Positions 2,235-26,100 of a stretch of DNA of 27,900 nt are shown here, one piece after another. The stretch spans positions 1-27,900 of the forward strand of contig NIVC01005046.1 of the NCBI GenBank assembly GCA_002269645.1, written 5' to 3'. The DNA comes from Macrostomum lignano (Eukaryota). Position 1 is the stretch's first letter; the number at the start of each line of letters is the position of its first letter. Made by a program: the position numbers and the translations under genes. The notes beneath the pieces are model-generated. The model made no database searches. It had not been told where the DNA came from and saw nothing but the letters and a program-made list of their open reading frames with translations.

Positions 2235-2252
2235 GTAGCTCTGTTGCTTCTC

Positions 2253-3705: not shown

Positions 3706-3784
3706 GCTCCATCACAACTTGTCCCTCACTGCACAGCGCAATGATATTCCCACGTTACAATTTTTACCCCCCTCTCGCCCGCAG

Positions 3785-4252
3785 GCACCGGTGCTGCAGT
3801 ACCTGTACTACCTGGCCCAGGTGCCCATGGCCATGTCGCCGCTCTCCAACAACAGCCTGTTCCTGCCCTACAGCCGCAGTCCCTTGCCAGACTTTCACGC
3901 CAAAGGCCTGTGCGTGACGCTGAGCACGGATGATCCGCTGATGTTCCACTTCACCAAGGAGCCGCTGATGGAAGAGTACTCTATCGCGGCCCAGGTGTGG
4001 AAGCTCACCAACACAGACATGTGCGAGCTGGCCAGGAACTCTGTAATCATGTCCGGATTTCCTCACGAAGTGAAGAAGCGTTGGCTCGGCCCGGCCTATC
4101 AACACGAAGGCGTCCTTGGCAACGATATTCGTTATACTAATCTGCCTAACGTTCGAGTGGCGTTTCGTTTCGAGAATCTGCTGCACGAATTGGCCCTGGT
4201 TACCACCGCTAATCCGAGGTCGAGAGCTCACAGCGGGCACAGCGGCTTGTCG
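3785..4252 (+). CDS. AMPD: AMP deaminase, C-terminal catalytic exon
   Basis: Acceptor CCCGCAG ends at 3784 and continues ...LLRK|[12 protein letters not shown] in phase 0. Contains [32 protein letters not shown] and DMCELARNS. Probable donor GTGGGT at 4253. Confidence 0.96.
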
Positions 4253-4277
4253 GTGGGTCCTGTGGCTGTTTGGGAAG

Positions 4278-4897
4278 AATCAAGATGGGATGGGATGGGA
4301 AGAATCGGGATGGGATGGGAGGGGAAGAATCGGGATGGGATGTGAAGAATCTGGATGGGATGGGATGGGAAGAATCGGGATGGGATGGGATGGTAAGAAT
4401 CGGGATGGGATGGGATAGGAAGAATCGGGATGGGATGGGATGGGAAGAATCGGGATGGAATGGGATGGTAAGAATCGGGATGGGATGGGAAGAATCGGGA
4501 TGGGATGGGATGGGAGCGGAAGAATCAGGATGGGATGGGATGGGAATAATCAGGATGGGATGGGAAGAATCAGGATGGGGTGGGGTGGGAAGAATCAGGA
4601 TGGGGTGGGAAGAATCAGGATGGGGTAGGAAGAATCAGGATGGGATGGGAAGAATCAGGATGGGATGGGAAGAATCAGGATGGGATGGGAAGAATCAGGA
4701 TGGGGTGGGAAGAATCAGGATGGGATGGGAAGAATCAGGATGGGATAGAGAGAATCGGGATGGGATGGGAGGGGAAGAATCAAGATGGGATAGAATGGGA
4801 TGGGAAGAATCAGGATGGGATAGAGAGAATCGGGATGGGAGGGGATGGGAAGAATCAGGATGGGATGGAAAGAATCAGGATGGTGGGAAGAATCAGG
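4278..4897. repeat. Purine-rich repeat of GGATG pentamers and GGGAAGAATC(A/G)GGAT units, probably intronic
   Basis: Direct periodicity; GGG tracts every ~5 nt. Confidence 0.95.
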
Positions 4898-5027: not shown

Positions 5028-5629
5028 GTCCTTAATTAACCTGAGATGTGCTTAAATCTGATTGAAGTACTTCGTAAACAAAGCATGCTTTATTATAGCT
5101 TTAATGTCAGCATTAATAGATTAGATGATTTCAAATCAGCTCTCGTGTTTGTTTTAATGATTCCATTCGATTTTTGGACTTCTTCACATGCCTAATTATA
5201 AAATTTTTTATTATTGATATAGTCACCACCTTAAATACTTATTTCGCATTACAATTTTTTATTAATATATAGTACTCTCCAAAAGCTTGCTGTGTTTTTT
5301 AAACATTTTATTCACTATTTACATCAATATATTGGTTATATTTTATTTTGTAGTAATCATGCATAATTATTATAGTTAGTTGTCACTATAGCCCCGATTT
5401 TTCGGCGAAGTTCTTTTTTATTCTACATACGAGTACACGCTACGTGCACAAGAATCTTCAGTAGGTGTTTAGTTATAATTTGTATACCGTCAAATATATT
5501 ATAGTGTGGAATCGTGGATGTTTTAATTGGAATATCCAGAAACTACTAAAAGTAGCCTGTTCTGTTTTTTTATTTCTTTTTTTCATATCTGAAATTTTTA
5601 TGTGCAATGCTTGAAATCTCTTAAGGGCT

Positions 5630-6437
5630 CCAGCTACAGAGGTGGGCGCCAGCTACAGAGGTGGGCGCCAGCTACATGAGGGGGCGCCAGCTACATGAGG
5701 GGCGCCAGCTACATGAGAGGGCGTCATTTACAGAGGGGGCGCCAGCTACAGAGAGGGGGCGCCAGCTACAGATAAGGGTACACCAGCTACAGAGGGGGCG
5801 CCAGCTACAGATAAGGGTACGCCAGCTACATGAGGGGGCGCCAGCTACAGATAAGGGTACGCCAGCTACAGAGGCGGCGCCATCTACAGATAAGGGTACG
5901 CCAGCTACATGAGGGGGCGCCAGCTACAGATAAGGGTACGCCAGCTACAGAGGGGGCGCCAGCTACAGATAAGGGTACGCCAGCTACAGAGGGGGCGCCA
6001 GCTACAGATAAGGGTACGCCAGCTACAGATAAGGGTACGCCAGCTACAGATAAGGGTACGCCACCTACAGAGGGGCGCCAGCTACAGATAAGGGTACGCC
6101 AGCTACAGAGGGGGCGCCAGCTACAGATAAGGGTACGCCAGCTACAGAGGGGCGCCAGCTACAGATAAGGGTACGCCAGCCACAGAGGGGGCGCCAGCTA
6201 CAGATAAGGGTACGCCAGCTACAGAGGGGCGCCAGCTACAGATAAGGGTACGCCAGCTACAGAGGGGCGCCAGCTACAGATAAGGGTACGCCAGCTACAT
6301 GAGGGGCGCCAGCTACAGATAAGGGTACGCCACCTACAGAGGGGGCGCCAGCTACAGATAAGGGTACGCTGCAGCTACAGAGGGGCGCCAGCTACAGATA
6401 AGGGTACGCCAGCTACAGAGGGGCGCCAGCTACAGAG
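5630..6437. repeat. Two-subunit minisatellite: GCCAGCTACAGATAAGGGTAC (21 bp) and GCCAGCTACAGAGGGG(G)C (17-18 bp)
   Basis: Shared GCCAGCTACA core; the units mostly alternate. Confidence 0.96.
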
Positions 6438-8129
6438 TACACCACTGTGTCATGTAAGATCGTGAATCCCTGGTGTAATCAGTAAATATTCGCCCGCTTA
6501 TTGTACATGTACGATCAGCCACTCTCTGATCCTCACCAGCTCAAGCTGGGGTCTTCTGTGACGCGGTTTTAATTGCGTCACCTGAGGGCTGATGAAGGTC
6601 TGAGAAAAGTTTACCGCACGTTTCGGGGTGCAGGAAATTTGAAATTTTTGCTGAGTTTATTGCATGTATATGCTCAGAGTCCAGAGGAATGGGCAAAACT
6701 GACTCAGTGCTCAGGGCAGAGTCCAGAGCGATAAATTCTTTAGTTTATATTTTCGGCTCCAGTTTTTTAGTTAGTCAGCAAAATAGAATTGTTTAATTCA
6801 ATGTGGCGACACGCATGCTAATCGAACAGAGATCTTCGATCTGATCTGTGGATATTGAGCTTTGTAACCATTGTCTTTGCCTAAAGCTCCTAATTCCGCA
6901 AGCACATAATCCTATAGTGCTTCAGCTCACCCTTGTGTGTAAAAATGGGCACTGAGGGCGTACATTTTTTGGGCGTTGTAGGACACTTACCCCTCCCTAT
7001 ATTGATTATTTTAAACTCAATTTTAAACTATATGTATATATTGAAGGAAAATGCTAGAACTAACGCAGGATCTGATCAAGACAAGGCTAGACTTGTTCAA
7101 CATACTTAAAAACTACAGTACAACAGATTGTGAGTTCACTTGCGCCTACTGAACAGTGAGCGGTAAGTTTTTGAACTTGATAATTTTTCAAAAATGTCAT
7201 CTCGAGCTACCTACTTTTGTTTTAATTGTGCTAGCCAAAGAGGTCTATTTTATGATTGATGTAAGAGAAACTTAGGGGTCAAAAAATTTTTTGTGTTTAT
7301 TCAATTTAGCCAATTAACTAGCTCCATATTTTATCTACAATTCGAACAAGATGAATGAGGCAGTCAAAAATAATCAGTCTTTCGCTCCTTTTTTGAGCGT
7401 TCCCGATGACTCTTTCCGTGACATGGGGGATACAGATCAGATATGTTTTATCTTGTTTAAAGTTACTTTTACTATAGTGCCAAACAAATGATTTGGCACT
7501 ATAGTAAAAGTAATTTTCATTTATCATTTTAATACTTTTTACTTTTTAAAACAGACAATTTTTAGTATTTAAGAGTTACGTTTTTTTGGTACGTCATAGT
7601 AACGTATAAAGTTGGAGTAAAAGTCACGTAGCTTCTTCTTTAAAGTTTATTTAAAAAATTGATTGAAAAGATAGTTTATCATGGCAACAGGGGACAAGTC
7701 TCAAAAAATACTTTTTGTTGACACAAAAAATAGTTTAGGTATCAGAGTTAAAAAATAATTAATTTCTCCGATTCTCTGTTGTAACCTGTGTTACATGTTC
7801 CTCACTTCTTTTTGAATTCTTACACTTACTTGAGTAGCTAAAATCTACGATGCCATGTACAGCTCAAAATTATTTACTTGGAACATATAACATGTCTATA
7901 TACAGTATAGATACATTTATAACAGAACGAGTCGAACTCCTCCTTTGGAGGAAAAAGGGGAAGAACTTCCATCACCGGAATTCTATTCCCTGAAATTCAT
8001 CGCTGAAATTCCATGTCTTGAACCCCATCTTCCTAATTGTCTCCAAATTCTTTACAAAACCTTTCAAATATATTGTCCATATATTGTTTTCCCTGTTTGC
8101 AAAAACTGACTACTATTGTCCAGACTCAG

Positions 8130-8995
8130 ACTCTCTAGTCTCCTTTCTCCTTTCTTCTCTCTCATCTCTCCCCTTTCATATCTCATCTCTTCTCACTTAT
8201 CTATGGTCTCTCCTCTACCCTCTCAGTCTTCTCTTTTCTGCCTCCGATACACTCTGACCCTCTCCTTTCTTATCTCCTATCCCATCCCATCTTTCTTCCC
8301 TCCTTTCTACCATCTCCTGTCTCCTCTGTTCTCTCTTTTCTCTCCTTTTCATTTTCTCTTCTCTCTTCTCCTTTCTCCTCTCATTTTCCGTCTTTTCTAT
8401 AATCTCTAATCTTTTCTCTCTCTTTTCTCACTCATTTCTTTTCTCATTGCATATCTAGTCTCTCCTCTCTGCACTCTCATCTTTATCCTCTTCTTTCTCC
8501 TCAGTGCTTTCTTCTCTAAATCTCTTAACTCTCTCATCTCTGATCTTTTAATCTCTCTTCTCTGTCCTTTCTCCCTTCCCCTCTCGCTTCTCTCACCTCT
8601 CTCCCCTCTCATCTCTACTACCTTATTTATATATTCTCCCTTGTCTTACGTCGTTACTCTCTACTCTTTATTACTCTTTACTCTCGCATCTTGCATCTCT
8701 CATCTCTCATCTTTTTTCTCTCCTATACTCTCTCCTCGCTTCTATTTCCTCTGTACGCTCTTATCCATCCTCTCTTTTCTTTCCTCTCATCTCTCCTGTC
8801 TCCTCTCTGCTATCTCATATCTCCCCTCTCATCTCCTCTCTCCTCCTCTCTCCCTCTTCATTCCCGCCTCCTCCCCTCCCCTCCCCTTTTCTCTCATCCC
8901 CCTTTCTCACCTATCTGTCATCTCTAATCCGTCCTCTCTCATATCTGCTTTCTTTTCTATCATCTCTCCTCTCTTCTCTTTACTCTCTTCTCTGA
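8130..8995. repeat. Pyrimidine-rich low-complexity (degenerate CT/TCTC) tract
   Basis: Plus strand is overwhelmingly C/T; ORFs here are S/L/F-rich artefacts. Confidence 0.9.
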
Positions 8996-9068
8996 CTGAT
9001 TTAATGTGCCAAATCAATCAAAATCCTCTTCGTGAAACAGAACTCCATCAAATTCTCTTCATAAGACT

Positions 9069-9288: not shown

Positions 9289-12200
9289 GTCTGTGCCTCT
9301 ACAACTGCCCCCGCCTGAGCCTTTCGATACTCAGAAAGAGCCACACAACCTCTCAGCACGGTGGGCAGAATGGGCCAACCGATTCAAGTGCTTTGTGACT
9401 GCAAGCGGCATAACAGATGCAAGTCAACAACGAGAGATTCTACTTTACGTCGGCGGCAAACAGGTGGCTGAAGCGTACGCAGAACTCACGAGGCCAGGCA
9501 AGACCCTCGAAGAGCTCCTGGACGCCCTCAAAGAGTACTTCAAGAGCAGACAACCCGGTATTCGTGCGATATGAATTCCGGCACTGCACGCAGCAGCCCG
9601 GCGAAGCCATCAACGCCTGGGTGCAACGGCTGTTCAAGGCTGCAGAAGGATGTGAATTCGAGACTCAGCGGGATCTCATCATCCGAGACCAAATTGTCGC
9701 CGGCTGCCAGTCAGACCAGCTCCGGCGCAGGTTGCTGCAGACACCCAATATCCAGCTCAAAGAAGCGCTGCAGCAAGCCAGGGCATTCGAGGCGGCCGAC
9801 CTTCAATCTGCAGTTATCGAAGCGCGGAAGAGCGAGTCTGTGAACGCAATGCGGCGTATCGAAAAGCCAGACCGACCGGAGCGAACCAGAACAAAGTGCA
9901 TCCGCTGTGGAGAGTCGGGCCACCGAACGTGCGAGGCGGCCAGAGGAAAGACGTGTCGGAACTGCAACAAGGTCGGCCACCTGGCAAAAGCGTGCTTGTC
10001 CAAACCCGCAAGCTCCAGAAAGGTGCACGCCATTGCCGAGGAGCAGCCGAGTGATCAGCAACAGCGAGACAGCGACAGCAGCTGCGAGGTGTTCTGCCTG
10101 ACGCCACAACGTAAGCGACTGCCGCTCGTTAAAGCAGACATCAACGGCCACGCCACAGACCTGCTAATCGATAGCGGCGCAAGCTGCAATCTAATGGACT
10201 CAAAAACATTCAAGGCCATCGGAGGCACGGCAGACGACCTTCGCGAGTCAAAGCAGCGGATCTTCCCGTTCGGCTCCAGTGAATCCCTCACCACTCTTGG
10301 CAAAGCGACCCTCCGGACCGCCGTTTATGACGTCAGCGCCAGCATTAGCTACATCATTGTCAAGGAGACGGGCACGACGATCGTGGGCCGCGAAACCAGC
10401 GAGAAGCTGGGAATCCTACGCATCGGACCAAGCAATCCCAGCGTCTGTCATCTGAAAGACTCTGGTGAGCTCCATGAGCCACTCAGCGCTGCATTGGCGG
10501 CCGCAGCGACGGAGGCAGACGATCAGGCAATGCCACAGCACGAGCGCCTCAGCAACATTATCAAGACTTTCAGGCAGCGATTTGTGGGAATTGGGTGCGT
10601 CAAGGACGTTGAAGTTGGCATCCACCTGCAAGACGGAGCCGTGCCGGTCTGCCATCCGCCAAGTCGCATCCCCGTGCATCTGCGAGAGGCTGCGCAGCGC
10701 GAGCTCGACGATCAACTGCAGGCTGGAATAATCGAGAAAGTGACCGGACCGTCCGAATGGGTGGCACGAATAGTTGTTGTCCCGAAGTCGCAGCCTGGCC
10801 AAGTGCGCATTACCCAAGATCTGCGAGATGTGAACAAGTTCGTAGTGCCCGAGAAACAGCCCATACCAACTTTTGAAGAGGTCACTGATGAAATGGCCGG
10901 TGCGCGCTACTTCACCGAGTTGGACATCAACAAGGCGTTTCACCAGATCCGCGTCCGAGAAGACTCGCGCCACCTGCTGACATTTTCGACGCCGAAGGGT
11001 CTCATGAGACTGACGCGCCTGTGCATGGGCTTTACGTCAGCGTCTGAGATTCTACAACGAGTCATGACCAGCGTGCTCGGCGGGCTTCCAGGAGTCCGCT
11101 GGGTACATGACGACATTATCATCTATGCAAGCTCCATCATTGAGCACAACCAGCGGCTAGCGGCAACCTTGCAAAGGCTAGAAGAGCACAACATCACCTT
11201 AAATCCGGCAAAGTGCAAGTTCGCCGTCAAGGAGGCCAAGTTTCTCGCTATGCGCCTGTCCGAGAAGGGCATCCAACCGACAGACGAGAAGGTGAGCGCT
11301 GTGAAAGCATTCAGAGCACCGAAAAACGCGTCCGAAGTGAGGTCCTTTCTCGGCCTTGTGGCTTTTGTCAGTCGCTTTATCCCAGCCCTGTCAGACATGG
11401 CCAAGCCCCTGCGAGATCTGACCAGAAAGGATGCGCCGTGGTCCTGGGGAGCAGCTGAGGAGACTGCTTTCAGCGCCATCAAGAACTCGATCTCCGCGAG
11501 AAGCACACTGGCATTCTTTGACAAGCGCAGACCCACAGAAGTGATCGTGGATGCCAGCCCGACGGGACTCGGAGCGATCCTCAGCCAACAGCAGCCAGAC
11601 GGCAGCTTGCGACCGATCGCCTACGCAAGCCGCGCACTGTCAGCGGTGGAGACGCGCTATTCTCAGACGGAAAGAGAAGCCCTCGCCGTCAAATTCGGTT
11701 GCCTTCGCTTCCGCCATTACCTCAGTGGTTCGTCCGGTTTCCGGGTCGTCACTGACCACAAGCCGCTGGTGCACCTATTTAAGCCAGGATCGCATCCGCC
11801 ACCAAGAATCGAGAGGATGGCACTGAGCATCCAGGACCTGGTGTTCGAGACAATGTACAGGCCAGGCTCGACCAATCCCAGTGACGTCCTAAGCCGGCAA
11901 ATCTTCCCAGCATCAGCGGTCTCCAGCGCAGGAGCAACCAGGGACAACCACTACATCAACAGCATTGCCGAGGACTCGACCCCAAAGGGACTGGCGCTGC
12001 AACAGCTTAAGGATGCAACAACGAGAGACGGAGCCCTCCAAGCAGCCATCTCAGCACTCCGAGGCGGCAAGTGGGATCTCCGAGAGGCTACCTTGCGGTC
12101 GCTGCACGCAGTCAAGCAGGAGCTCTCCGCAGCAGACGGAATCCTACTGAGAGGCCAGCGCATCGTCGTCCCCGAAGCGCTGCAGCTGACGGTGCTGCGG

Positions 12201-13265
12201 CTCGCTCACCAAGGACACCAGGGAGCAAAGAAGACGCAGGCGAGGTTATCGGCGAAGGTCTGGTGGCCCGGTATGGCAGGACAGGCGCAGCGGATGTGCA
12301 ACGTCTGCCTCCCGTGTCAAGCTGCGAGTCATCAGGCCGAAGTTCCAGCAGCGCCGCTGCAAGCCACACCACTGCCACCGCATGCCTGGCACACCCTGGG
12401 CATCGACTTCACCGGGCCAGTGCAAAACAAGCATCTACTCGTCATAGTTGACCATTTCTCCCGCTATCCGATAGTCATCAGCATGTCGGCCATGACAGCC
12501 GAGGCGGTCACCAAGCAGCTCCGGAAGCTATTCTCCACGTTCGGCAGACCAGCGCAGCTCGTCTCAGACAACGGGCCCCCGTTCAGCTCGCAAGCCTTCC
12601 ACGACTTCCTCCGCAGCAACGGCGTGCAGCACCGCTCCATCACTCCGTACCACCCGGCAGCAAATGGAGTCACCGAACGCATCAACCGCTCGATTAACAA
12701 GATCATCCGCATCGCAAGCATCGAGAAATCCGACTGGCGGGCCGCACTCGAAGACTGGCTGGAGGCCTACCGCAACACGCCACACAGCAGCACTGGAGCC
12801 ACCCCTGCGGAGCTGATGTTCCAGCGACAGGTGCAAGACTGCATCCCCAGCATGCGACAGCGCAGCCGAGTGCCCAGCACTTTGGCCGCGGTCAGGGCTC
12901 GCGACTGCGCCGCCAAACAACGGATGGCGCGCCATGCAGATGAGCGCCGAAGAGCCGCCAGCCACAACATCATGGCAGGCGACTCGGTGCTGCGCAGGCG
13001 GCGCCCTGCCTCCAAAATGCAGACACCCTTCGAGCCAGAGCCGTGGGTCGTCGAGGAGGTCAAAGGCGACTCCCTCATCCTGCGCAGAGCGCACGAGTCC
13101 TGCATGCGCCACATCACGGACCTCAAGCGCCTGCCGACGGCCGACTTCCCGCCACCGCCGCCCACGCCGCCACCGACCGAAGGCAGGCCGAAGTCACCCG
13201 AGTCCATTGCGCTGCGGGCTCACCCACGTGCGTGTAAAAGCCGACCAATGAGTTTAAACCACTGA
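9287..13265 (+). CDS. Gag-Pol polyprotein (one frameshift inside gag near 9545-9552)
   Basis: ATG at 9287. Two knuckles CIRCGESGHRTC and CRNCNKVGHLAKAC; protease LIDSGAS; RT FTELDINKAFHQI and WVHDDIII; RNase H VDAS/TEREAL/TDHKPL; integrase zinc finger H..H..C..C and IDF/SDNG/NGVTER. Confidence 0.95.
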
Positions 13266-13420: not shown

Positions 13421-13700
13421 ATATTCGAAACTAATGCTCGTATTTATATTCGCAAACTAATGCTCGTATTTATATTCGCAAACTAATGCTCGTATTTATA
13501 TTCGCAAACTAATGCTCGTATTTATATTCGCAAACTAATGCTCGTATTTATATTCGCAAACTAATGCTCGTATTTATTTTCGCAAACTAATGCTCGTATT
13601 TATATTCGCAAACTAATGCTCGTATTTATATTCGCAAACTAATGCTCGTATTTATTTTCGCAAACTAATGCTCGTATTTATATTCGCAAACTAATGCTCG
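13421..13700. repeat. 26-bp tandem array (AACTAATGCTCGTATTTATATTCGCA) in the retrotransposon 3' UTR
   Basis: CTAATGCTCG recurs every 26 nt at 13431, 13457 ... 13691 (11 starts), then degenerate copies to about 13745. Confidence 0.97.
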
Positions 13701-13918
13701 TGTCTATTTTCATAAGTAATGCTCATTTGATCGTAACTAATGCTTAAACTCTTATCCATGCTCATATTTGTGTTTATGCCCTAATGAATATTCGCTCTCA
13801 CATCCGTATATTTTCATACTATTCACTCACATCCATTCCCCTCTGATTCCCACTTCGAAATGTTTACTTAGCTTCCCATTTGCTCTTATCTCCTAACTCT
13901 TATCCGCTTGGGGAAGGA

Positions 13919-14118: not shown

Positions 14119-14885
14119 AGACTGAAATACATCAAATTCCCTTTTGATTAACTACAATCTATCAATATAATCAATAATATCTCCATTAAATTACAGTCAA
14201 TTAAGACTCCGTTAAATTGAAATCTATTAAAAGATGCTTTCTACTTGTCAAGCATAAAATATTCAAGGTACATTAGAAGCTTCGGTGGTTAGGGTTAGCG
14301 TTAGAGCTGCACAGAGTTGCGTGTTAAAAGGCGCCGATAATAAAAAATGAGCATTTAATGAGTGAGGGGTTTTTTTGGGGTGGTTCTTCTTGCTTTTTTG
14401 CTACCATACAAAATAGCCAGTTTGACCGAGCGAACGAGGTGAGCGAAAATCCACACTCATTTTGGGTGAATATTGTCTTCTTTGTTGTGTCCAACTGTTG
14501 AAAAATGCTTGGAATGCTTGGAATGCACTCCCATTTTGAGCGAAGTGTAATGAATCGAAAACTGGGTGATCGCTGAGGTGATTTTCAATGAATTGACAAA
14601 GAAGAAAAATTTATTCTCAAATCGAGATGGGGTGTGGTCAAAACTTTTTTTATGGTAGAATACTGCTCCCAACAATACACTGTCTTAACTTTCAATTACT
14701 GGATTTGTAGAGTTTTTCATATTTTTAATATACTTGTAACATTCAGCCGCCTGAACCTTCACCTCACAAATTTTCAGAGAACATCTATCGAGGCTGACAG
14801 GACTATTCTAGATTCCAACTTCCTCCGCTAACGTGTTGTTCGTCTCCAACTCTCCGCATTTCCTTTGTTGCGCACTGAAGCGACA

Positions 14886-17587
14886 ATGAACATTAAAGAC
14901 TTAAATGAAGTTGAATGTCACACAAAATGGTTTGCCAAGTTTGACATCATTGAAGAACGTGTCAAGAAAGTTTTAGACGACCTTGAATCGGAAAAGTCTG
15001 ACTCACCATGGCTGTCAGATCTCTACCTGCTCTTGAAAGCTAATCTCCGGACAATGCCGATGTTCTGTGATTTAGGCAAAGCGTGGAAGTTGTTAAGTGA
15101 AACAGAAAGGGAAGTTCCAGCATTGATTAACGTACAGTTTCTGGTCAAAGCAACAAAACTTAGGCTTATGGAGATGGAATCGAGACCGGGAAGTCCATCA
15201 GGACAAACGTATGACGAGGCAAAGCAATATTTAGAGGACTTCTCGGCTCATGAGCTAACAAAAGCAACTTGCTTGGTTGTCAAATGCTGGACAATGCGAT
15301 GGTTCGCCGTCGGGCCCCATAGGAAAGCCATAATAAAGGACTGTGAATATGCTCTTCAAGATGCCAAACAGATTCTGGACACTACGAAAAAGATTCCTGA
15401 AAATCCAGAGTCCCAGGCCGTTAAGTTTTTATGCCTGTACAACTCGCATTGGTTCTCAATGAACAGCGAAATGAAAAACTTTTCATTTGTCGTGAAGAGC
15501 TCCAGCATTGGGAAGAGGCCAAGAGTATATTGGATGAACAGAAGTGGCAAGATGTGATGTTTCTAGCCGATTTTGCGAGGGCAGTCGCTTCAACACCGAC
15601 GCATTCGAAATTATGTAAAAATCTGTTAAAAGCTACAGAGGATTGGACAGAAACTACAAGGACAAACAGAACAGATGGCAATGAAAACAGGTCAAAACCG
15701 TATCGAATGTACATCGCGTTGCCAGAAGTTTATTCGACTCTGATCAGACGTCTGAACAGAATGGGAAAGGACAAAAATGAAGTTGAGACTTTTAGCGAAA
15801 AGATCAGAAGCATACTTGAACAGGGCAACGAAATCGAAAAATGTAGAAATCACCCTTCCTTCATTGCTGCAAAGGTAGGACAATTTCTATTTGATTCACG
15901 AGTAAATGAAGCAGAAGACCTACTAAACGAGAGTATTTTCGGAAATGAATACTGGTTAGAATTGAAACGAATTCAAGTGCTACTCAGGAAGCCGAAAGAA
16001 GATGTCGACATTCAATCAAGTCTCCGTCTATTCGAGACGCTCTGCACCAACTTTCCGAACAAAGAAGCGATTATCCGAATGGACAAGGGCATTTTTCTTT
16101 TGAAGCACGGTGATGTCAAGAGAGGTATGGAAAATCTCATCTGGGCCAATAACGACTATTTGCATCCTGCCTATAGAAACAATGGGTTTATAATGCAATA
16201 TCTAAGAGAAATCCAAGCTGCAGTAGCAGAAGAAGAACATTATCTGATTTGGATTGAAAGTCAGTTTGAAACTGATTCGGAAACATATCACGTAGGAAAG
16301 TCAATAAAAAAGTACCAGAACTACCAGCCATTGTCCGATGAGCAGAAGCACTTTGTCAACGAGCACCTCGGCCGGCTGCTGATGCGTAAGTCGCAGTTCG
16401 AAGAGGCCGAGCAGCTGTTCCGCTCACTGCCTGAGTCCGTGCAGCACAGAACTGCAATGATCGCTGACTCTCTCCTCTGCCAAGCGGAGAGCTTGTCGAG
16501 CGGAGATGACGTCAAAGAGGTGTGCAAGGACAAGCTAGCCAAGATGCAAGCGGAGAGCTTGTCGAGCGGAGATGACGTCAACGAGGTGTGCAAGGACAAG
16601 CTAGCCAAGATGCAAGCGGAGAGCTTGTCGAGCGGAGATGACGTCAACGAGGTGTGGAAGGACAAGCTACCCAATAAAATGCGGCTGCACCTGCTAAACG
16701 AGTGCGCCTCACTCGGCTGCAAGGACTCCGTACACGAGGCACTGCTGCTGCTGGAAGAAGACATTCGGAAACAGAGCGACAGAAACAACGTGTTGCAAGT
16801 GAATGCGGACCCCTTGTTCCTGCACAGCACATGCGTCTATGAGTTTTGCGCCCGACTGACTGAGCTGAAGAACGCCGGCTTTCACATCAAACGACGTCGC
16901 ACAGCTCCTGAAGATGAAGAAGGCATAACAGAGAAAATGTCCGACCTGCTGAAGAAGGTGAAGGAAATTCTATGTCAGCAATCCTACCCAAGGAAGCTAA
17001 GGTTAAAAATGACTAGATTGATTCTAAAAGAATCACAAGAAAAAGACGTCTACTGGCGCAGTATGTGGCTCACACTGGATGAGCTTAGAAAAGAACTGGA
17101 TAGAATTTGGCACGACTTCATTGCAGCGGCTCGAAATAACCCCATAAATAAAAAGGTAGATGTTAGTTGTTGGAAATGTCCTGTTTATTATCCGCTAACC
17201 CATGACCAGAGAAATGCAAATACAAGTGCTGAGAAGGCTCTTGAGGGTAAATGGAAATTGAGTTATAATAAAAAAGAGAATAGAAAGTTTGACGACAATC
17301 CTGATGTGCAGTTTCCTCTTGCACCAAGAAGCACTCATTACATTTTTAAATGGATGGCTCAGAAGGAGACAGCGATTGGGGAAAACGGAAACTGGCTAGA
17401 GCTTTGGAGCAGTAAAATCAACCAAGACAAACATAAAACTGCTGTTGAACTGAGAAAATTGAACTCGGATATCGAGAAAAAATTTCAAGAGTCAAATACT
17501 CGTAAAGGCCCAGCCAACTTGCAGCAGCTGGCGCACTTTGCAGCAGAGTTCGTAGAGGAGGTCAGATTCGTACTTTTGTCTTATAAG
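14886..17587 (+). CDS. Exon 1 of a ~1430-aa protein: IFIT-like TPR region, 3x22-aa repeat and HEPN-like domain (one -1 frameshift between 15431 and 15557)
   Basis: ATG at 14886. Track ORFs 14865-15557 and 15431-17596 join if one base is restored (e.g. an A in the run at 15469-15471). Donor AAG|GTAAGT at 17588, phase 0. IFIT-like motifs LNEVECHTKW, PENPES, LSDEQKHFVNEHLGRL. HEPN-like LDELRKELDRIW / VYYP / WLELWSSKINQDKH. Confidence 0.75.
16481..16669 (+). repeat. In-frame 66-bp tandem repeat (~2.9 copies; QAESLSSGDDVxEVCKDKLAKM)
   Basis: Units start at 16481, 16547 and 16613 and are nearly identical. Confidence 0.97.
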
Positions 17588-17921
17588 GTAAGTTAGACCG
17601 ATGAGCAATTGATTTCCTGAATATATTCCCACGAAGCCTACTATTTTATCCTAGGCTAGTAGACTAGTGGACTAAGGATCACTTACATCTACTATGAAAT
17701 ATCCATCTAGAAATCTTGTCTACAAACCAGCTCTTGAGAATCTAACTGATTGTGCAGGTTTGCTAGTTTGTGCAAAGTCCTCCAAACATCTGTTCTGTCC
17801 TTTTATTCCTTAGCATCCCGGCCTGTGTTTCGCACTTAATTCGCGCTAGTAAAAACATCTCACACTCATCCTGAGGAGAGTTTTCGAACTCCCAATGCAC
17901 TAATTTATCCATTTGTTTCAG

Positions 17922-18576
17922 TACAAAGAAGTCAGCGGCTTTCCAATGAAGTTCGAAGCCTTGAAGTCCGACTATGATTGGAAATGGGCCTGCTACAAAT
18001 GCGCTACTGGGTTCGATGCACTTCGCAGCAGATTCGAAGAGCCTTCAGAACAATGCACGGACTGTCAGCAGGTCATTCTGCTGGTTCGTGACAAAAACGC
18101 TGTCAGTGGCAGCAAGTGGCAGCACATCAGGCCCAGACGCCGAAAGCTGATCAAGCTTGAAATGTGCTTCAAGTACAGCGACATTCCTGACTGCAACGAA
18201 TGCATGCGCGCCCACTGCGACTCCGCGCATGGCGAGGCTGAATACCGGCTGTGGGAACTGGAGAGGATCGGCAAGTTCTCTTTCAACAGATTCATGAAGC
18301 AGCATCGCAATGCTCAAACGGAGCTGCCTCTGGTCATCTGCGAAAGGGCTGGCGAGAGCGGTGTGAGACAGATATTTTACACTGGCCCTCCTGGCCCTCC
18401 AGAAACTCAAACTCTTGCTAGACTGCCTCCCACTGAGACTAAGAATAACCGGTTTGCAAGGCTGTGTGAAAAATTCTCTCGAGGCATACCCTGTCCTTTT
18501 TGGCGAGATGGAAAATGCTACTACGCCCACTGCGCCGAGGAGGAACAACTGTGGAACATTATGAAAAAACCAAGAG
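17922..18576 (+). CDS. Exon 2: CxxC..CxxC plus two CCCH-type zinc fingers (ZC3H7/RoXaN/HELZ-like module 1)
   Basis: Acceptor TTTGTTTCAG ends at 17921 (phase 0, matching the 17588 donor); donor AGAG|GTAAGG at 18577 (phase 1). CYKC-x17-CTDC, ILLVR...WQHIRPR, C..C..C.SAHGEAE..LWELER, C-x8-C-x7-C-x3-H. Confidence 0.85.
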
Positions 18577-18698
18577 GTAAGGGCAGTTTCAGGATTGAGA
18601 GCAACCTTGGGAATCAACTGGTGGTCCCATCAGCTAGGCTTGGCTGAGCTGGAAGGTGCTCATGATCATAGTTACCCCATCACTAATAAATATTTCAG

Positions 18699-19334
18699 AA
18701 GACTGGCCAGCTGGACTGAGAGAGCTTATCGACAAGATTAAGCCTGGATTGACTGGTTGGATCCTGCAGTTTCATTGTGACTGGAAGCTGGTCTGCTACA
18801 AGTGCGCCAATTCGAGTGATGCACTGCAGAGCAAGTTCTCAATGAATGCGGCTACAACCGAATGTAAGAACTGTGAGCAGTGCTTCCTTTTGGTCAGAGA
18901 GAAGAGCAGCGCAGTCAGCAATGAGTGGCAGCGAGTCCGACTCAAAATGCGGAATCTGAGTAAGTGCCATAATTATGGACGGCGTGGAGAATGCAGGTAC
19001 TCAGACTGCGACTTTGCCCACGGAGATTTGGAGCTGAAGATGTGGCAACTGGAGAGGACCCAAAAGTTCTCATTCGACCAGTTTCTAAAAGACAATCGCA
19101 CAGCTGCGTCAGAACTGCCGCTGATTCTCCGCGAGCTGCCAGCAGGCTCTGCGAGTCGCATTGTGTACGCGGGCCCAGAGCAACGGCCCGCTAGACTACC
19201 GCCACCAAAATGCAACAAGGCCCAGCTTTGTAAAAGTATTTTTGAAAAAGAGGATTGCCGCTACAGAAATAATTGCAATTTTGCTCATTGTGCCGAGGAG
19301 GAGCAGTTGTGGAACATCATGAAAAGTCGCGGAG
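18699..19334 (+). CDS. Exon 3: second copy of the same zinc-finger module
   Basis: CACTAAT branch point at 18681 and acceptor TATTTCAG ending at 18698 (phase 1); donor GGAG|GTAAAT at 19335 (phase 1). CYKC-x19-CKNC, C-x8-C-x4-C-x3-H and canonical C-x8-C-x5-C-x3-H. Confidence 0.87.
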
Positions 19335-19675
19335 GTAAATTCCTGGTCTTCATTTGATCCTTCAAATTTGTAACTAAAAACTAAAGTACTTAGCAAAAGA
19401 TTGGTTCGAGTACTGGCTCGACAGCATATCCCTTCAGATGTCCCACGGTTTGCAGTAATTATCCGATGGTTGGGTTTCGGATTTGTCTTGACTGGGGACG
19501 TTGCTAATGCCTGCAAGATACTTGAATCGAAGGGTGGGCGTAGTCTTTGTTGCCTGACTGTTTCACCAACCTACTTGGTTCAGGCTTCAGTAAATTCTGA
19601 AAAGACGAACAGACTCCGCGTGTTCTTGAGTAAATATGCAAGTAAAATTTACTAAATTTTATTCGATATTTCCAG

Positions 19676-19980
19676 ATATTCCCAGCGCTCTGCAAGCTCT
19701 TATTAAAAAACTGGAAGAAACAACTAGCAGAAACAGCGACTCCAGGCTCCAGGAGAATTGCACAGCTGGTTCGAGTTATACACGCCAGGTAGCAGCTCCG
19801 AGCCAACCCAATGCGCAGAGCTCCAATAGCGGAAGTTCTGCCAGCCAATCCACACGGATTAAAAAAAGGGCCACAGACTGTGGAGACAAAAAAGGAGTCA
19901 AAAGGAGTCAAGAAAGACCTCAGGAGTCAAAAAAAGCTCAGAATCGGTTTCAAGCACTGTCTGACGATGCTGAAGGCTAA
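19676..19980 (+). CDS. Exon 4: low-complexity S/Q/K-rich tail, stop TAA at 19978-19980
   Basis: TACTAAA branch-like motif near 19650 and acceptor TATTTCCAG ending at 19675; phase 1 matches the 19335 donor and the frame of track ORF 19636-19980. Confidence 0.7.
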
Positions 19981-21164
19981 CACATATTTATCATTCATTT
20001 TTCACGACTTTATTTAATCAGATTTTTCAATTAAGTTCTATAAATTTGCTCTTTTAATTTTTGCACTCTGCAGTTATTCAAAATGTGTGTGTACTTCGGG
20101 TATTAGTCATTAACAATGTCACCGTCCTCGTTAAGTAACTAGAGAGAAAACTGACAATTAAGTCAATGAATCCATTAGTATCAATGAGCCGATGGCAATT
20201 CAGCTTCGGGGCTTAATAATAGTAATATTTGCAGGAGGGCTGTGGGCCTTTGACACATCATTTTGTGACGTCAGGCAGTGTACATTCTCTCTGTGCCTTG
20301 GAGGTTGGCCCTCATGAGCGTAAATTGCACGAAAAGCCCCCAAATCTTCTCTCCACGGCTGCGCCTCAAATTAGTGTGGCCTCTCCGCGGAATCGAGCTC
20401 AGGGACGGTGGTGCGAGAGGCAAAACGCATTAGACCGTTCTGCCACTCATCCCCAGCGTCGGGACTTAGCTGAAACTCACTCTGCGAAGAAGAGGTAGCA
20501 GAGTTTCACTTATGACACACCTGAAGTGCATATCGCTTTAGAAATTCACTTCTCTTTGAAACATAAGAACACTTGAGAATAAGAATCATTTGGTTATCAT
20601 GCTTTATTATTATAACACGTAGCTAGCCGCGTAGTGTAATTTCGTTAATTGCTAACTGTTCTCTTAACTTGACATGGTACATGATCATATATTTCCCGAC
20701 TGTGCTTTACTTACTCGCTTGAGTATTTGATTTGCCAGGTGAAGTGAAACGAAAGCAGTGGATATATCTTGGGCTGTTTTCTGCTGCTCTTTGCATTTGA
20801 TTTGAGTAAACTAACCACTGAGTACTTACTAAGTACGCTCGTACTAAGAAATCAGTTTGTTTATTACCTTAAAATGCGATATAATACCATTATCATGAAA
20901 TTCTATTTAGCAAACCTTTTTTGCCGCAGTAGTACTGACTTTTTATTTTAGCTGCGATTCATAACGTACGAAATGTGATATTATTATAATATCGTATATT
21001 ACTCTTGCAGAAATTTTTCTATTGATTTTTTAACCCCAATAAATATTAATATATTAATTTGCGTTTGAAAAAAGTTAACATTTTTCGACCATTTGTTATC
21101 AAAACGTAAATTGTTGAAATGTTTTTTTGCCTTCGCATACAGTTTACTGTTGTGCATTCTGCAC

Positions 21165-21845
21165 TGGCGGCACTGGCGTGGTGGTGCTGGTAGTGCTGGT
21201 GGTAGTGATGGTGCTGGTGCTGGTATTAGGGGTTGTGCTGGTGGTGCTAGTAATGGTGCTGGTGGTGCTGGGTAGTGCTAGTGCTGGTGGTAGTGGTGGT
21301 GGTGTTGGTGGTAGTGCTGGTGGTGTGGTGGTTAGTGCTGGTGGTGCTGGTGGTTAGTGCTGGTGGTGCTGGTGGTAGTGCTGGTGGTGCTGGTGGTTAG
21401 TGCTGGTGGTGCTGGTGGTTAGTGCTGGTGGTGCTGGTGTTAGTGCTGGTGGTGCTGGTGGTAGTGCTGGTGGTGCTGGTGGTTAGTGCTGGTGATGCTG
21501 GTGGTTAGTGCTGGTGGTGCTGGTGGTTAGTGCTGGTGGTGCTGGTGGTTAGTGCTGGTGATGCTGGTGGTTAGTGCTGGTGATGCTGGTGGTTAGTGCT
21601 GGTGGTGCTGGTGGTAGTGCTGGTGGTGCTGGTGGTTAGTGCTGGTGATGCTGGTGGTTAGTGCTGGTGGTGCTGGTGGTTAGTGCTGGTGGTGCTGGTG
21701 GTTAGTGCTGGTGATGCTCGTGGTTAGTGCTGGTGGTGCTGGTGGTTAGTGCTGGTGGTGCTGGTGGTTAGTGCTGGTGGTTAGTGCTGGTGGTGTTGGT
21801 GGCGCAGCTGGTGGTTATAGTGCTGGTGGTGCTGGTGCTGGTGCC
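21165..21845. repeat. GGT/GCT-rich minisatellite with a homogeneous 22-bp core (GTTAGTGCTGGTGGTGCTGGTG) and degenerate triplet-like flanks
   Basis: Direct periodicity. Confidence 0.95.
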
Positions 21846-22984
21846 TTGCGAGCAAGTGGCGTTGGGTTCTAGCCCAGTACGGTGACGATAGCCTTTAGAC
21901 CCGGCCCGTGCGGAGCTGGGCGAGAAAAAGCAGCGGCGGCTTGGCTGTTGGTCTTGTTCGGACGCGTGCCTCTGCTGGCTTTGCGGTGTGGGTTGCGCTG
22001 TGGGGGTCAGAGGCGTACGGGCGGTCAGGCTGAGCGTGCTGCCTGGAGGCTCACTGCCCAGGAGGTAATATCCAGGAGGTCGCGCCAGCTCCCGGGTTTC
22101 TTGTCAGTTGTCACTGAGCCGAAACTCGTAATCGTTGTATTTATCTATTAATAGTTACTTATAAATATTCCATTTTTGGTGTGTGCCAGAATAATCTCAA
22201 AGCAGTTTTTCAGCATTTGCAACGACATCAGAAATATAGCAGCTCATGGCAGCTTTTCAATTACTCTGCTATTATTCTCATATCAGCTAAGACACAATCT
22301 CAGGCCGCTGCTTGTAGTCTCAGACTGAATGAGTTGATGAATGCAAGGAGGCGACGAGTAAATTAATATTCAAATCATTAGATCATCTGTGGTCTCCAGA
22401 CACTTCAGCGAACATGTTTTTCAATTTTGTTTTGAAAGCCAGCTTGTCTTTAGTTAACTTCTTCTAAGCCCAGCCAGTCACGAAAAGCAAAACGTTTTGA
22501 CCATAGAGCATTTCCTAAGTTTTTATTTAAATTACCGTGTCTCATTGGAATGACAGTTAAACCCCTTAAAGTTGCATTGCCAGGCCAGGCTGTTGTGCTA
22601 TGCAAAAATTGCTGTCAATGCAAAACTCGGAAACATATCAATTGAGTCCTGTCAGTTCAATAAGCATTCTGTTTTTAGGCGTCGAATCGCGGCGCAGAGC
22701 AAAGCGTGAATTCAAACTGACAGCTCGCTATTTCATTATTCCCAAACCAAAAGTAAAATCAAGAAAAAACTTCAAACCTAATATGAAAATATCTATAAAT
22801 ACGTCTTGACTCATCTAACACATGAACCACTAGATGTACAGCAGTAGGAAAACTCCAGTCCATGGACTCAGGGCAAAAATTAAGCTAACCTTAACCTAAA
22901 AAGCATACGCGACTGTAAAAAGTTGTGTCTAGCATAAAAGTGCAATATTCGAAGGCGCAAGACAGGCAGGCTTTAGGAAAAAAT

Positions 22985-23157: not shown

Positions 23158-26100
23158 AAGGGCTAAAACACCAACAGTGTACATTCAAGTCACGATAGAG
23201 CAGAGACGTGCAAAGAGCGTGAGACCAGACACAGGGCGCACGCACAGGGTTAAAATCACAAACGATACGCAGAGTAAAAGCGCACGCCCAACCCCCAGGC
23301 ACCAGGCCCAACACTGCCCCCGCAAAAGCAAACGAAGACTGAAACCAGTAGAAAAAAATCAGAGTCAAGTACAGTCACAAAGAGTCACTAGTCTTTATAG
23401 CAGACCGGCTGGCGCGGCCGAAGCTCGTACGGTTCCCTCCGGCCGCTGGTCAGGGGCGCTGCCGTTGGTTCCGGATCAGAGAGTTGCTCAACCTTGGCGT
23501 CAGGAAGCTGCTCCCGCAACTCCGACTCAGGTTCGGCCCCCTAAAGCGACCCAGGCGCACTCATCCGGCCGGTTCACTGATTCGAGTGCGCCATGCAGCC
23601 GCAGGCCGCCGTCCGATTGGTCCGCAGGGGCTACCAGCGCCGTGTTCGGCCCTGCTGCACCACGTACTTGGCCGGAACCGGCGAGCATCCCGGACGCATC
23701 CTCAGCAAGATTGGATCGCCCACCTGCTCAGTCATGTTTAGGCGACGACCCCACATCAGAATGTCCGGAGATGCCGCTCGATTTCCACTGGGCCGGCTGG
23801 TCCTGATCGTCAGCAGCAGTTTCTGCAGAAAGTGGTCGAACGGCACCATTATTGTCCACGCCTTGAGTCCATCCTTGATGATCCTCACCAGCCTTTTTGT
23901 CTGACCGTTCGAGACCGGATGGAGTGTGCAGCTCCTGGAACCCGATGCTGTGCAGCCACTGGGACACTCTCTCTGACTTGAACTCCGGCGCATTGTCCGA
24001 CATCAGCGTCCGAGGCACTCCGTTCCTGGCGAACACCGCTCTCAGAACCCACAGGACACTGTCCGCAGTTCGGTCTGGCACCTGGATGGCCTCAGGCCAC
24101 CCCGAGTAGGAGTCCGACAGCAGCAGTAGCAGGCCGACTCCAGATATCTCACAATGGTCCATGTGAACCGGGGACCACGGCTCACTCTCTGCTGGCCAGG
24201 TGTCGATTCTCCGCTGCAGGACTGGCCGAGTTTCTGAGCACTGCTGGCAGCGCTCCACAAAGCTGCGAACATCGCGATCGAGACCCGGCCACCAGAACTC
24301 CTTGGAGATGTGCGCCTTGGTGTTGTCGGCACTCGGATGCACCTCGTCGTGCGCCACCTCCAGAATGCGCCTGCGGAGATCAGGTGGCGGCACAATTCTG
24401 GTTCCGTGGATCACCAGACCATCTTCCACCGACAGCGCCTCCCGGCACGCTTTGTACGGCCTCTCCACCTTCGACACCTGGCCCCACCGGCCCGTTCGGA
24501 TCCTCTGCTGCAGCCGCTTCATCAACGCGCACATCCTGGTTCCGTCACGAAGATCCTGCAGAGTCATCAGAGCTCCTTCTGACACGACCTCTTCATACTC
24601 CAGCTGGTGCACAGCGTCACTCGGAGGGTCTTGGGCAGCAAAACTCAAAGGAGACAAGGCATCCGCATCCACCATCAGTCTTCCTGGCACATACTCCACC
24701 TCGTAGTCAAAAGCAGATAGTCGCAGTGCCCAGCGAGTTAGTCTTGCCGACACTGTTTTAGGAAGATCCTTGCTGGGATTGAAGATGTACTTCAGTGGTT
24801 CGTGGTCAGTCTGCAGCGTGAACCTCTTCCCCAGAAGCATCTTGTGGGCTCGCTCCACCGCCCAAACAATGGCCAGTGCCTCCCTCTCAATGTTGGAGTA
24901 ATTGGCCTCAGACTTGGTCAGCGCCCGAGAGAGGTACATGACTGGGTGTCCTGACTGCACCAGCACAGCGCCCAGCGACTGCTCGCTAGCATCCACCCGC
25001 AGACACACCGGCGAGTTGACGTCAAACGGTTTCACACACGGATTCGAGCTCAGGCTCTGCTTCACATTGGTGAACGCTGCCTCGGCAGCCGCACTCCAGT
25101 CAAACACACGGTCCGCTCGACGAAGTTCCTGCAGAGGCCGACACTTCTCAGCAAAGTTGGGAACCAATCGACCGTAGAACTGCGCAAGTCCCAGAAACCG
25201 CTCGAGATCCTTCTTGCTTTTCGGAGCCTCCACATCCTGAATCTTCTGCACCATTCCCGGATCCGGCTTGATCCCCTCTTCATCGATGATGTGGCCCAGG
25301 AACTTCAAGATAATTGGCCTCCAAAATGCACTTCGCTTCGTTGATTTTCCCATTAGCCGTCCTCAGCTTGTCCAGCACCTTCTCTCTGATATTCTGCAGC
25401 TCCGCTTTCGACACCGCTCCCATGAGTACATCGTCCTGGTGCACGATGACACTTGGGTGCTCACCCAGCAGCGAGCTGAGCAGATCCCGGCCGAGCAACC
25501 CGAACTTCTGCTCGCATTCGATGACGGGCAGCTCCGCCGCAGCGAAGCGGCCATCAGGGCCGCCAGTCTCCACCAGGCACTCCAGGATGCCGAGCTGCTT
25601 CATTACGTGCCCGTCGTTGGCCAGCATCCGAGACTTGGGCGACTTCAGGGGCGGCCTGCCGAGTTCTTCCCAGATCTTTCTCGAGATCAGTGAGCACGAG
25701 GCTCCGCTGTCCTTTTCCATTTTGACCTGCCTTCTGTTGATTTTCACATCACAGAATGCAGCACGGGTGCCCGCACCGCAGTAGAAAACCGGCTCGTCTC
25801 TGGTCACGGCTGAGTCAGAGTGCTTGGATTCTTTGGGTGCGACAAAGTGGGTCCTGGCACTCCGGCAGACCTTCGCGAAGTGGCCAGTCTTGCCGCACTT
25901 GTGGCACGTAACCTTCAGAGCCCGGCAGTCTGTCGGGTCGGCGATGTGGCGCCTGGCCGCATCGCTGGCAGCTCTGGCCTCCACTGGCCCTGGGCCTCAC
26001 CATCTCCGCCGCATTCACGCTGTTGGCACCTGCAGAACTTTCTTCTGGCACCTCCTGGCTAGCGGGCAGCGCCTGATGCACCGCCGAGTCCACTTCAGCT

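Follow-up and report, generated by a model that had tools for sequence, protein, structure and literature searches.

A conserved alpha-helical domain with an N-x-D-K-H motif in a gene family of Macrostomum lignano, and its resemblance to a bacterial family

Does an animal gene carry a HEPN-like ribonuclease (RNase) domain built around motifs of a bacterial type? This is the question raised by the region 16990-17560 of a 27,900-nucleotide stretch of Macrostomum lignano DNA (contig NIVC01005046.1, positions 1 to 27,900 of the forward strand, assembly GCA_002269645.1; the whole stretch is called the window below). A preliminary description of the region had picked out three spaced motifs, related them to a family of bacterial proteins, and read them as a variant of the HEPN active site. 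We are highly confident that a real conserved domain is encoded here. It is an undescribed alpha-helical domain of about 200 residues (nucleotides ~16931-17587), and it belongs to a small gene family with several paralogues. Membership in HEPN is not supported.

The domain was studied in alignment A2, which holds 10 domain sequences including that of this gene. Positions in A2 are numbered from nucleotide 17000, and adding 689 gives the residue of the full-length protein. The features of the domain are:

17000..17587, plus strand: conserved domain as aligned (A1, A2) and modelled, 196 amino acids, full-length residues 690-885
17072..17119, plus strand: motif 1 (TLDELRKELDRIWHDF), L-x-[DEN]-x-[RKH]-x-x-L-D, with L715, R719, L722 and D723, in the long first helix
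17177..17194, plus strand: CPVYYP, which contains motif 2, Y-Y-P at 17186..17194, with P754
17366..17368, plus strand: the near-invariant glutamate E812 of an [RK]-E motif, in helix 111-128 (E123, at least 90% conserved)
17393..17434, plus strand: motif 3 (WLELWSSKINQDKH), W-x3-W-x4-N-x-[DE]-K-H, with W821, W825, N830, D832, K833 and H834
17531..17560, plus strand: motif 4, A-H-x-A-A-E-F-x-E-[EQ], with H868, E872 and E875, in the last helix

The three motifs noticed at the outset, which start at 17072, span 17177-17194 and end in a histidine at 17432-17434 (codon CAT), are confirmed at these positions, and all are in frame in an open reading frame (ORF) of 721 codons, 15431-17596 on the plus strand, that contains the whole flagged region. 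Motif 4, about 35 residues downstream of motif 3, was absent from the preliminary description. Seven residues are invariant in A2, W132, W136, K144, H145, H179, E183 and E186 (W821, W825, K833, H834, H868, E872 and E875), and they are held despite pairwise identities to this gene's domain of 21-36%. The histidine of NQDKH is thus conserved in all ten sequences, and the conserved lysine is the residue directly before it. At least 90% conservation was found at L26, L33, D34, P65, E123, N141, A178, A181, A182 and F184. Motif 2 is followed, up to about 17330, by an insert that is poorly conserved and differs in length; in the paralogues P0001 and P0012 there is a coiled-coil insertion of about 110 amino acids after motif 2.

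The conservation with paralogue P0001 already starts near 16931, upstream of the modelled domain. The stretch 16931-17000 encodes a helix and a basic [YW]-[PR]-R-x-x-L-x-x-T-[KR] motif, which reads YPRKLRLKMTR here and IWRRRRLDATK in P0011. Since this conservation lies outside A2, the true boundary of the domain may be 30-60 residues nearer to the N-terminus.

HEPN domains are four-helix bundles in which a variable insert separates helices 2 and 3, and their motif is R-x4-6-H, with a polar residue (N, D or H) directly after the arginine and often an acidic residue in helix 2; some families, for example Parep1/8, keep the histidine without the arginine (Anantharaman et al. 2013, PMC3710099). 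The idea that the animal motif is a K-x5-H variant of this site does not survive the alignment. No basic residue is conserved four to six positions before the histidine in A2: position -5 from H145 is I or V, -6 is variable, with K here alone, and -7 is variable as well. The lysine in question, K139 (K828, nucleotides 17414-17416), is replaced in the nine other sequences by E, E, S, E, A, S, P, A or T. R-x4-6-H is therefore absent, and K-x5-H is peculiar to this gene. N141, four residues before the histidine, is found in nine of the ten sequences (D in one) and is a possible counterpart of the polar HEPN residue, although the arginine that would precede it is missing.

The searches gave no HEPN signal. 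The domain had no match in Pfam, NCBIfam or PADLOC, and a Pfam-A hmmscan gave no HEPN model for the 10 animal members (E≤10), nor for five members of the bacterial family described below (E≤1). The 721-residue ORF had no sequence match in the PDB, and a profile search against PDB sequences gave chance-level matches only, the best with an E value of 0.14. Matches to DUF1722, E1-E2, Cas6, sigma factors and others in Pfam, PADLOC and NCBIfam were treated as noise, since each occurred in one sequence and most of these sequences carry long inserts. A match to the NCBIfam model of chlamydial Tarp (E 0.2-0.25, 9.6-9.9 bits against a cut-off of 400 bits) was also rejected as noise.

With A2 as input, AlphaFold2 predicted an all-alpha fold of moderate confidence, with a predicted local distance difference test score (pLDDT) of 64.5 and a predicted template modelling score (pTM) of 0.60; from the single sequence the model was of no use (pLDDT 36.9). 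The helices are 2-46, 76-84, 111-128, 132-139, 147-164 and 174-195. The insert at about 47-110 is of low confidence or disordered, with a pLDDT below 50 for residues 67-110, and the helix of motif 4 has a pLDDT of 81-89. N-x-D-K-H (141-145) is located in the loop between helix 132-139, which carries W-x3-W, and helix 147-164. When this moderate model was compared by Foldseek with a PDB copy, in which solved HEPN structures should be present, there were no matches at E≤0.001; the best was YicC (E=1.2, template modelling score 0.22), and no HEPN structure was among the 50 matches listed. Foldseek against BFVD returned no match and no HEPN structure. As far as searches of Pfam, PADLOC, NCBIfam, the PDB and Foldseek reach, the domain has no profile or structural similarity to HEPN, and the suggestion of a HEPN RNase is not supported.

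The bacterial side of the question has another answer. The pattern given in the preliminary description, LENLRSALDY...(I/V)YFP...WL..L..L.N.(D/N)KH, corresponds to a family that exists. We scanned one genome per species from 185,579 prokaryotic species with back-translated W-L-x2-L-x2-L-x-N-x-D-K-H and obtained 71 matches, against a chance expectation of about 35 on a uniform-composition estimate. About 33 of the 71 are in ORFs of 210-350 amino acids, and all of these have NLRSALD[HY], FP[IV] and LQP[YF] upstream of the motif that was searched for. The family pattern is G-[DE]-x-[VI]-H-N-L-R-S-A-L-D-[HY] ... F-P-[IV] ... L-Q-P-[YF] ... WL..L..L.N.DKH, usually with an arginine after the histidine. 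In the bacterial alignment R71, L74 and D75 are at least 90% conserved, and the F-P motif (F99, P100) comes about 25 residues past L-D. An arginine or lysine at position -7 from the histidine is present in just about 8 of 21 members.

The members (loci L004-L071 in prokaryotic genomes) are from Actinomycetota, Chloroflexota, Alpha-, Beta- and Deltaproteobacteria and Acidobacteriota, with a fragment in a Bathyarchaeota assembly. Among the viral contigs of IMG/VR, three of 10 matches belong to the family (L074, L076 and L080), and these are prophage contigs. Two matches were on plasmids, one of them in an annotated record where it is labelled 'hypothetical protein'. At 9 of the ~33 loci an ORF for an IS1595-family transposase is found in the same 8 kb, usually adjacent, and in at least one case it appears to truncate the gene. 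All-against-all clustering of the neighbouring ORFs gave no conserved partner gene, and the IS1595 transposases alone recur; a search of the literature for passenger genes of IS1595 had no usable result. Weak matches to phrog_13652, of unknown function, were found for five of 21 members. The family is apparently stand-alone and undescribed. Neither Pfam, NCBIfam nor PADLOC has a model for it, it has no relative in the PDB, and consequently it offers no functional annotation that could be transferred to the animal domain.

Are the two families related? When A2 was aligned to the bacterial alignment by hhalign, all three motifs were in register with a probability of 55% (P 1.2e-4), and a second run gave 46.8% (P 2e-4). 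The bacterial-style triad of collinear motifs in an animal gene is real. Motif 3 was the criterion by which the bacterial proteins were retrieved, and both alignments were for that reason cut just before it. The cut alignments still gave a score of 25.4 (P 9e-4), pairing L-x-E-S-R-x-x-L-D with N-L-R-S-A-L-D and Y-Y-P-F with F-P-I. In 150 column shuffles the mean score was 9.3 (standard deviation 1.6, maximum 14.8), none of the 150 reached 25.4, and the reversed profile scored 14.2.

The two families have in common [N/D/E]-x-[R/K]-x-x-L-D on a helix, [FY]-P, and W-x3-[LW]-x4-N-x-D-K-H, in this order; the animal Y-[YFH]-P, whose proline P65 is at least 90% conserved, aligns to the bacterial F-P. 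From L-D to P there are 17-31 residues in the animal sequences compared to about 25 in the bacterial ones, and from P to W about 66 compared to about 48. An N-terminal region of a helix plus a strand, Q-P-[YF], a C-terminus with a beta-rich look, H-N before the arginine and an arginine after the histidine are features of the bacterial proteins only, while the two final helices with A-H-x-A-A-E-F-x-E are found only in the animal domain. The bacterial proteins are also single-domain and stand-alone, whereas the animal domain is embedded in a multidomain protein. From these sequence comparisons we lean towards homology of the animal domain and the bacterial family, which is unproven.

The gene that carries the domain has five exons, 14886-19980 on the plus strand, and encodes 1,416 amino acids in one unbroken frame, with the splicing predicted from sequence; all four introns are GT..AG. 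Its parts are:

14886..15419, plus strand: exon 1, ATG at 14886, 178 codons, the start of the TPR-like helical N-terminus, from the ORF and sequence
15420..15466, plus strand: intron 1, 47 nucleotides, GTTAAGT...ACAG, predicted splicing
15467..17587, plus strand: exon 2, the remaining TPR-like region, a 22-residue tandem repeat and the whole domain; ends AAG|GTAAGT
16481..16674, plus strand: coding tandem repeat (SLSSGDDVNEVCKDKLAKMQAE), 66-nucleotide unit, 2.9 copies, 97% matches
17588..17921, plus strand: intron 2, 334 nucleotides, GTAAGT...TTTCAG
17922..18576, plus strand: exon 3, zinc module 1, a CxxC...CxxC ribbon and two CCCH-type fingers
18577-18698, plus strand: intron 3, phase 1
18699..19334, plus strand: exon 4, zinc module 2, a duplicate of module 1, 41% identical
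19335-19675, plus strand: intron 4, phase 1
19676..19980, plus strand: exon 5, Ser/Lys-rich tail, stop TAA at 19978-19980

In the protein the order is thus a TPR-like region, the 22-residue repeat, the domain (about residues 667-885), two cysteine-rich modules and a Ser/Lys-rich tail. There is an apparent frameshift near 15430, between the ORFs 14865-15557 and 15431-17596, which could be read as the mark of a pseudogene. This reading was rejected, because the 47-nucleotide GT..AG intron 1 accounts for the frameshift. The alignment to the M. lignano protein P0015, over residues 2-515, spans the junction of exons 1 and 2, and paralogue P0001 reads ...SYKEVSGFPMKF straight through the junction of exons 2 and 3 (17587/17588) into the next ORF. 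The N-terminal region is long and helical, and its TPR-like character is reflected in a weak match to Pfam TPR_19 and in the UniRef label 'TPR_REGION' of a paralogue. P0001 has a single unit of the 22-residue repeat and this gene has 2.9, so the copy number differs between paralogues.

The module in exon 3 is 94% identical to P0001 540-643 and gave weak Pfam matches to zinc ribbons and CCCH fingers. Exon 4 matched Pfam zf-CCCH with an E value of 8e-4 and 19.7 bits, just below the cut-off of 20.5 bits, and gave weak matches to CCCH structures in the PDB. The spacing C-x7-9-C-x4-6-C-x3-H is visible in the translations of exons 3-4, and UniRef names the homologous paralogues 'C3H1-type domain-containing protein'. 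Each zinc module has its own exon, which ends at a phase-1 donor (G|GTAA), and this looks like an exon duplication. On the minus strand under the domain there are ORFs of 46-54 amino acids, none of which matched anything in the searches run. Rfam had no match anywhere in the window.

A word-indexed search with the whole ORF found one relative, P0001 of M. lignano, and word-indexed searches with the domain alone and with a 10-sequence profile found nothing new. As the sole close relative is an M. lignano protein, the host is an animal, and the domain does sit in an animal gene as first proposed. An exhaustive HMMER search of 1.84 billion representative proteins with a profile of this domain and P0001 gave 11 matches at E<1e-3. 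P0006, a repeat protein of 1,179 amino acids, owes its match to the coiled-coil insert of P0001 alone and was set aside as a repeat artefact. The ten real relatives are M. lignano proteins, which include all the named ones, and ORFs in the ENA assembly ERZ25074608. These ORFs are on eukaryote-like contigs of 54-510 kb, occur in tandem, and share the N-terminal region of this gene. With ten real relatives in 1.84 billion proteins, and these in M. lignano and ERZ25074608 alone, the family looks narrowly distributed among eukaryotes. A literature search for Macrostomum together with HEPN gave nothing usable.

One locus of ERZ25074608 (L001) has tandem copies of the family at 10001-12610, 16666-18762 and 20300-20587. 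In the second copy about 1.6 kb, an intron or insertion, separates the Y-H-P half from the W..W..N.DKH half.

CCCH modules follow the domain in this gene, P0001, P0002, P0004 and P0012. In P0003 (PAA78669.1 of M. lignano) the domain is followed by about 500 amino acids of near-perfect RGG/RG repeats (about residues 500-1001) and no zinc fingers, and this is a second, independent association with a module of the RNA-binding type.

The comparison with P0001 revealed a mosaic. The two proteins are 92-100% identical over residues 381-636 and 893-972, and just 22-40% identical over residues 677-852, which is the domain. P0001 has the long version with the coiled-coil insert, as does P0012, a paralogue of 45% identity, and this gene is without it. 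The GC content at third codon positions falls to 0.36 over the domain's first half, compared to 0.58-0.77 in the flanks. Judged from these patterns, either the central domain may have been exchanged between paralogues, or the flanks may have been homogenised around domains that diverged long ago. P0001 could be a chimeric gene model. Such cassette-like divergence is common in conflict-related effector domains.

What could the domain do? In our working model, which is the explanation that we prefer, [RK]719-x3-D723 on one face of helix 1, E812 of the third helix, the N-x-[DE]-K-H loop and H868, E872 and E875, which would share a face of the last helix (i, i+4, i+7), would come together in one pocket. 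This pocket would bind RNA that the neighbouring modules of RNA-binding type hold, and would probably also process it chemically. His834 and Lys833 would be the likeliest catalytic residues, and the zinc fingers would deliver the domain to its substrates. The core shared with the bacterial proteins (R..LD and N.DKH) would then be the ancestral functional site, with an origin in prokaryotic mobile elements and a later fusion and expansion in the animal lineage. Taken as a whole, a polar-pocket domain that acts on RNA and is distant kin of the bacterial family, this model comes close to being probable but does not quite reach it. Catalysis on RNA, considered by itself, is possible and tentative.

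Several points weigh against the model. The clustering of the residues in one pocket is deduced from helical periodicity, and activity and RNA binding are likewise predictions. The confidence of the structure model is moderate (pLDDT 64.5), and the CCCH assignments fall slightly short of the Pfam thresholds. The hhalign probability is about 50%, under the 75-98% that is usually accepted, and comparisons of hidden Markov models (HMMs) with single sequences gave E values of just 0.1-1, though the top matches were on the right segments of sequences outside the pattern definition. The agreement in motif 3 is partly by construction, since the search pattern was taken from this gene. The bacterial proteins also lack motif 4, and on both sides of the shared core they have extra regions which, by eye, look beta-rich.

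The bacterial resemblance could instead be convergent or accidental, with the domain having arisen as a novelty within the lineage of macrostomid-type flatworms. We regard this as a serious possibility, though not the one that we favour. It is consistent with the exhaustive search with the animal profile, which gave no prokaryotic protein at E<1e-3, and with the lack of any confirmed relative when the same profile was run against the 185,579 prokaryotic genomes, JGI metagenomes and IMG/VR; the weak HMM-to-sequence values and the differences beyond the three motifs point the same way. The three motifs are nevertheless in the same order with comparable spacing, and the cut hhalign score is far above those of the shuffled and reversed controls, which argues against chance. 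It is also conceivable that the domain is a divergent HEPN without the arginine, a metal-independent RNase in which His834 is the H of R-x4-6-H and N830 the polar residue after the lost R. The invariant histidine with a near-invariant N four residues before it is arranged as in R-N-x3-H, K at +4 of D723 in five of nine sequences is loosely like E-x3-[KR], and RNA-binding partner domains would suit an RNase. In the model the motif falls where a helix ends and a loop begins, and a variable insert precedes the helix pair; both have been described for HEPN, and families with the histidine only, such as Parep1/8, exist (PMC3710099). The small all-alpha domain, its association with RNA-binding modules and its lineage-specific expansion are further likenesses to HEPN. 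Against this, neither Pfam, PADLOC nor NCBIfam gave a HEPN match, and none was among the Foldseek matches listed. The animal family lacks a conserved basic residue at -5 to -7, just about 8 of 21 bacterial members have one at -7, and the five or six helices of the model include an additional one at the C-terminus, which is conserved and carries H-x3-E-x2-E. HEPN families seldom recognise one another when the alignments are shallow. We consider such a HEPN unlikely.

If the domain is no enzyme, it may be a non-catalytic helical module, that is a scaffold, a surface for oligomerisation or partner binding, or a passive RNA-binding surface, in which the invariant Trp, His and Glu residues are structural. 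The predicted all-alpha fold and the TPR-like flank would fit this, Trp accounts for two of the seven invariant positions, A178, A181 and A182 resemble helix-packing positions, a long coiled-coil insertion is tolerated within the domain in P0001 and P0012, and no enzyme family was matched. On the other hand, charged or polar residues occupy five invariant positions out of seven (K, H, H, E, E) and three near-invariant ones (N, D, E) at identities of 21-36%, and three polar positions are kept in the bacterial family, which is unusual for a pure scaffold. This explanation seems to us rather improbable, and a metal-binding helical bundle is considerably more so. The latter would be a sensor or metalloenzyme of a hemerythrin- or DinB-like kind, with His834, His868, Glu872 and Glu875 as ligands. 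Two invariant His and two invariant Glu are available, H179, E183 and E186 fall at positions i, i+4 and i+7 of a helix predicted with confidence, and the H-x3-E spacing is typical of hemerythrin-type sites. Neither Pfam (hemerythrin, DinB, ferritin-like) nor Foldseek gave a match, though, and the helix of motif 4 is wholly missing from the bacterial relatives, which means that the His/Glu site cannot be the ancestral functional core. The working model of an RNA-acting polar pocket can also be extended further. A nuclease-like effector domain of a prokaryotic mobile element or prophage could have been captured by a macrostomid ancestor, fused to TPR-like and CCCH or RGG modules, expanded and then diversified by domain swapping, to become an effector of innate immunity or of transposon-RNA surveillance with an uncatalogued fold and an N-x-D-K-H active site. 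As a complete scenario this is unlikely.

The surrounding window is repeat-rich eukaryotic DNA with satellites, two Ty3/gypsy-type elements and an AMP deaminase exon:

~3782-4208, plus strand: C-terminal piece of an AMP deaminase, inside ORF 2681-4345 (Pfam PF19326, E 7e-70)
9417-13265, plus strand: Ty3/gypsy-type coding region 1, an intact ORF of 1,282 amino acids with zinc knuckle, protease, reverse transcriptase, RNase H and integrase
23728-25984, minus strand: Ty3/gypsy-type coding region 2, split into at least two ORFs
7-665, 2250-3706, 4271-4897, 5625-6436, 13421-13701 and 21178-21844: six satellite or minisatellite arrays, periods 21-44 nucleotides, up to 50 copies

The AMP deaminase piece starts just past the array of 28-nucleotide units at 2250-3706, in the same open frame. 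Several of the arrays show an extreme GC or AT skew, for example at 8001-9000 and 21001-22000.

Among animal proteins, ZC3H7A/B, the IFIT proteins and ZAP/ZC3HAV1 recognise RNA by means of TPR-like repeats or CCCH fingers. The present family is like them in its helical-repeat N-terminus, its CCCH fingers and its character as a multi-copy, fast-diverging family, although the searches detected no resemblance in sequence to these proteins. It differs in its zinc modules, which are a duplicated unit of a ribbon plus two CCCH fingers, and none of those proteins is known to possess the domain. No described family or structure in the libraries searched matched the domain, and its bacterial counterpart is likewise undescribed there. 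A deeper comparison of profiles or structures could still attach the domain to HEPN or to another known fold.

M. lignano is a tractable model for regeneration and the germline, with RNA interference and transgenesis, and this makes the function of the domain testable. The bacterial family, spread over several phyla and found on prophage contigs, would itself merit inclusion in screens for phage defence or addiction. Should the domain prove to be an enzyme, it would form together with its bacterial counterpart a new family of nucleic-acid-targeting effectors common to prokaryotic mobile elements and an animal lineage, and would join the few immune or conflict domains known to have moved from bacteria into animals.

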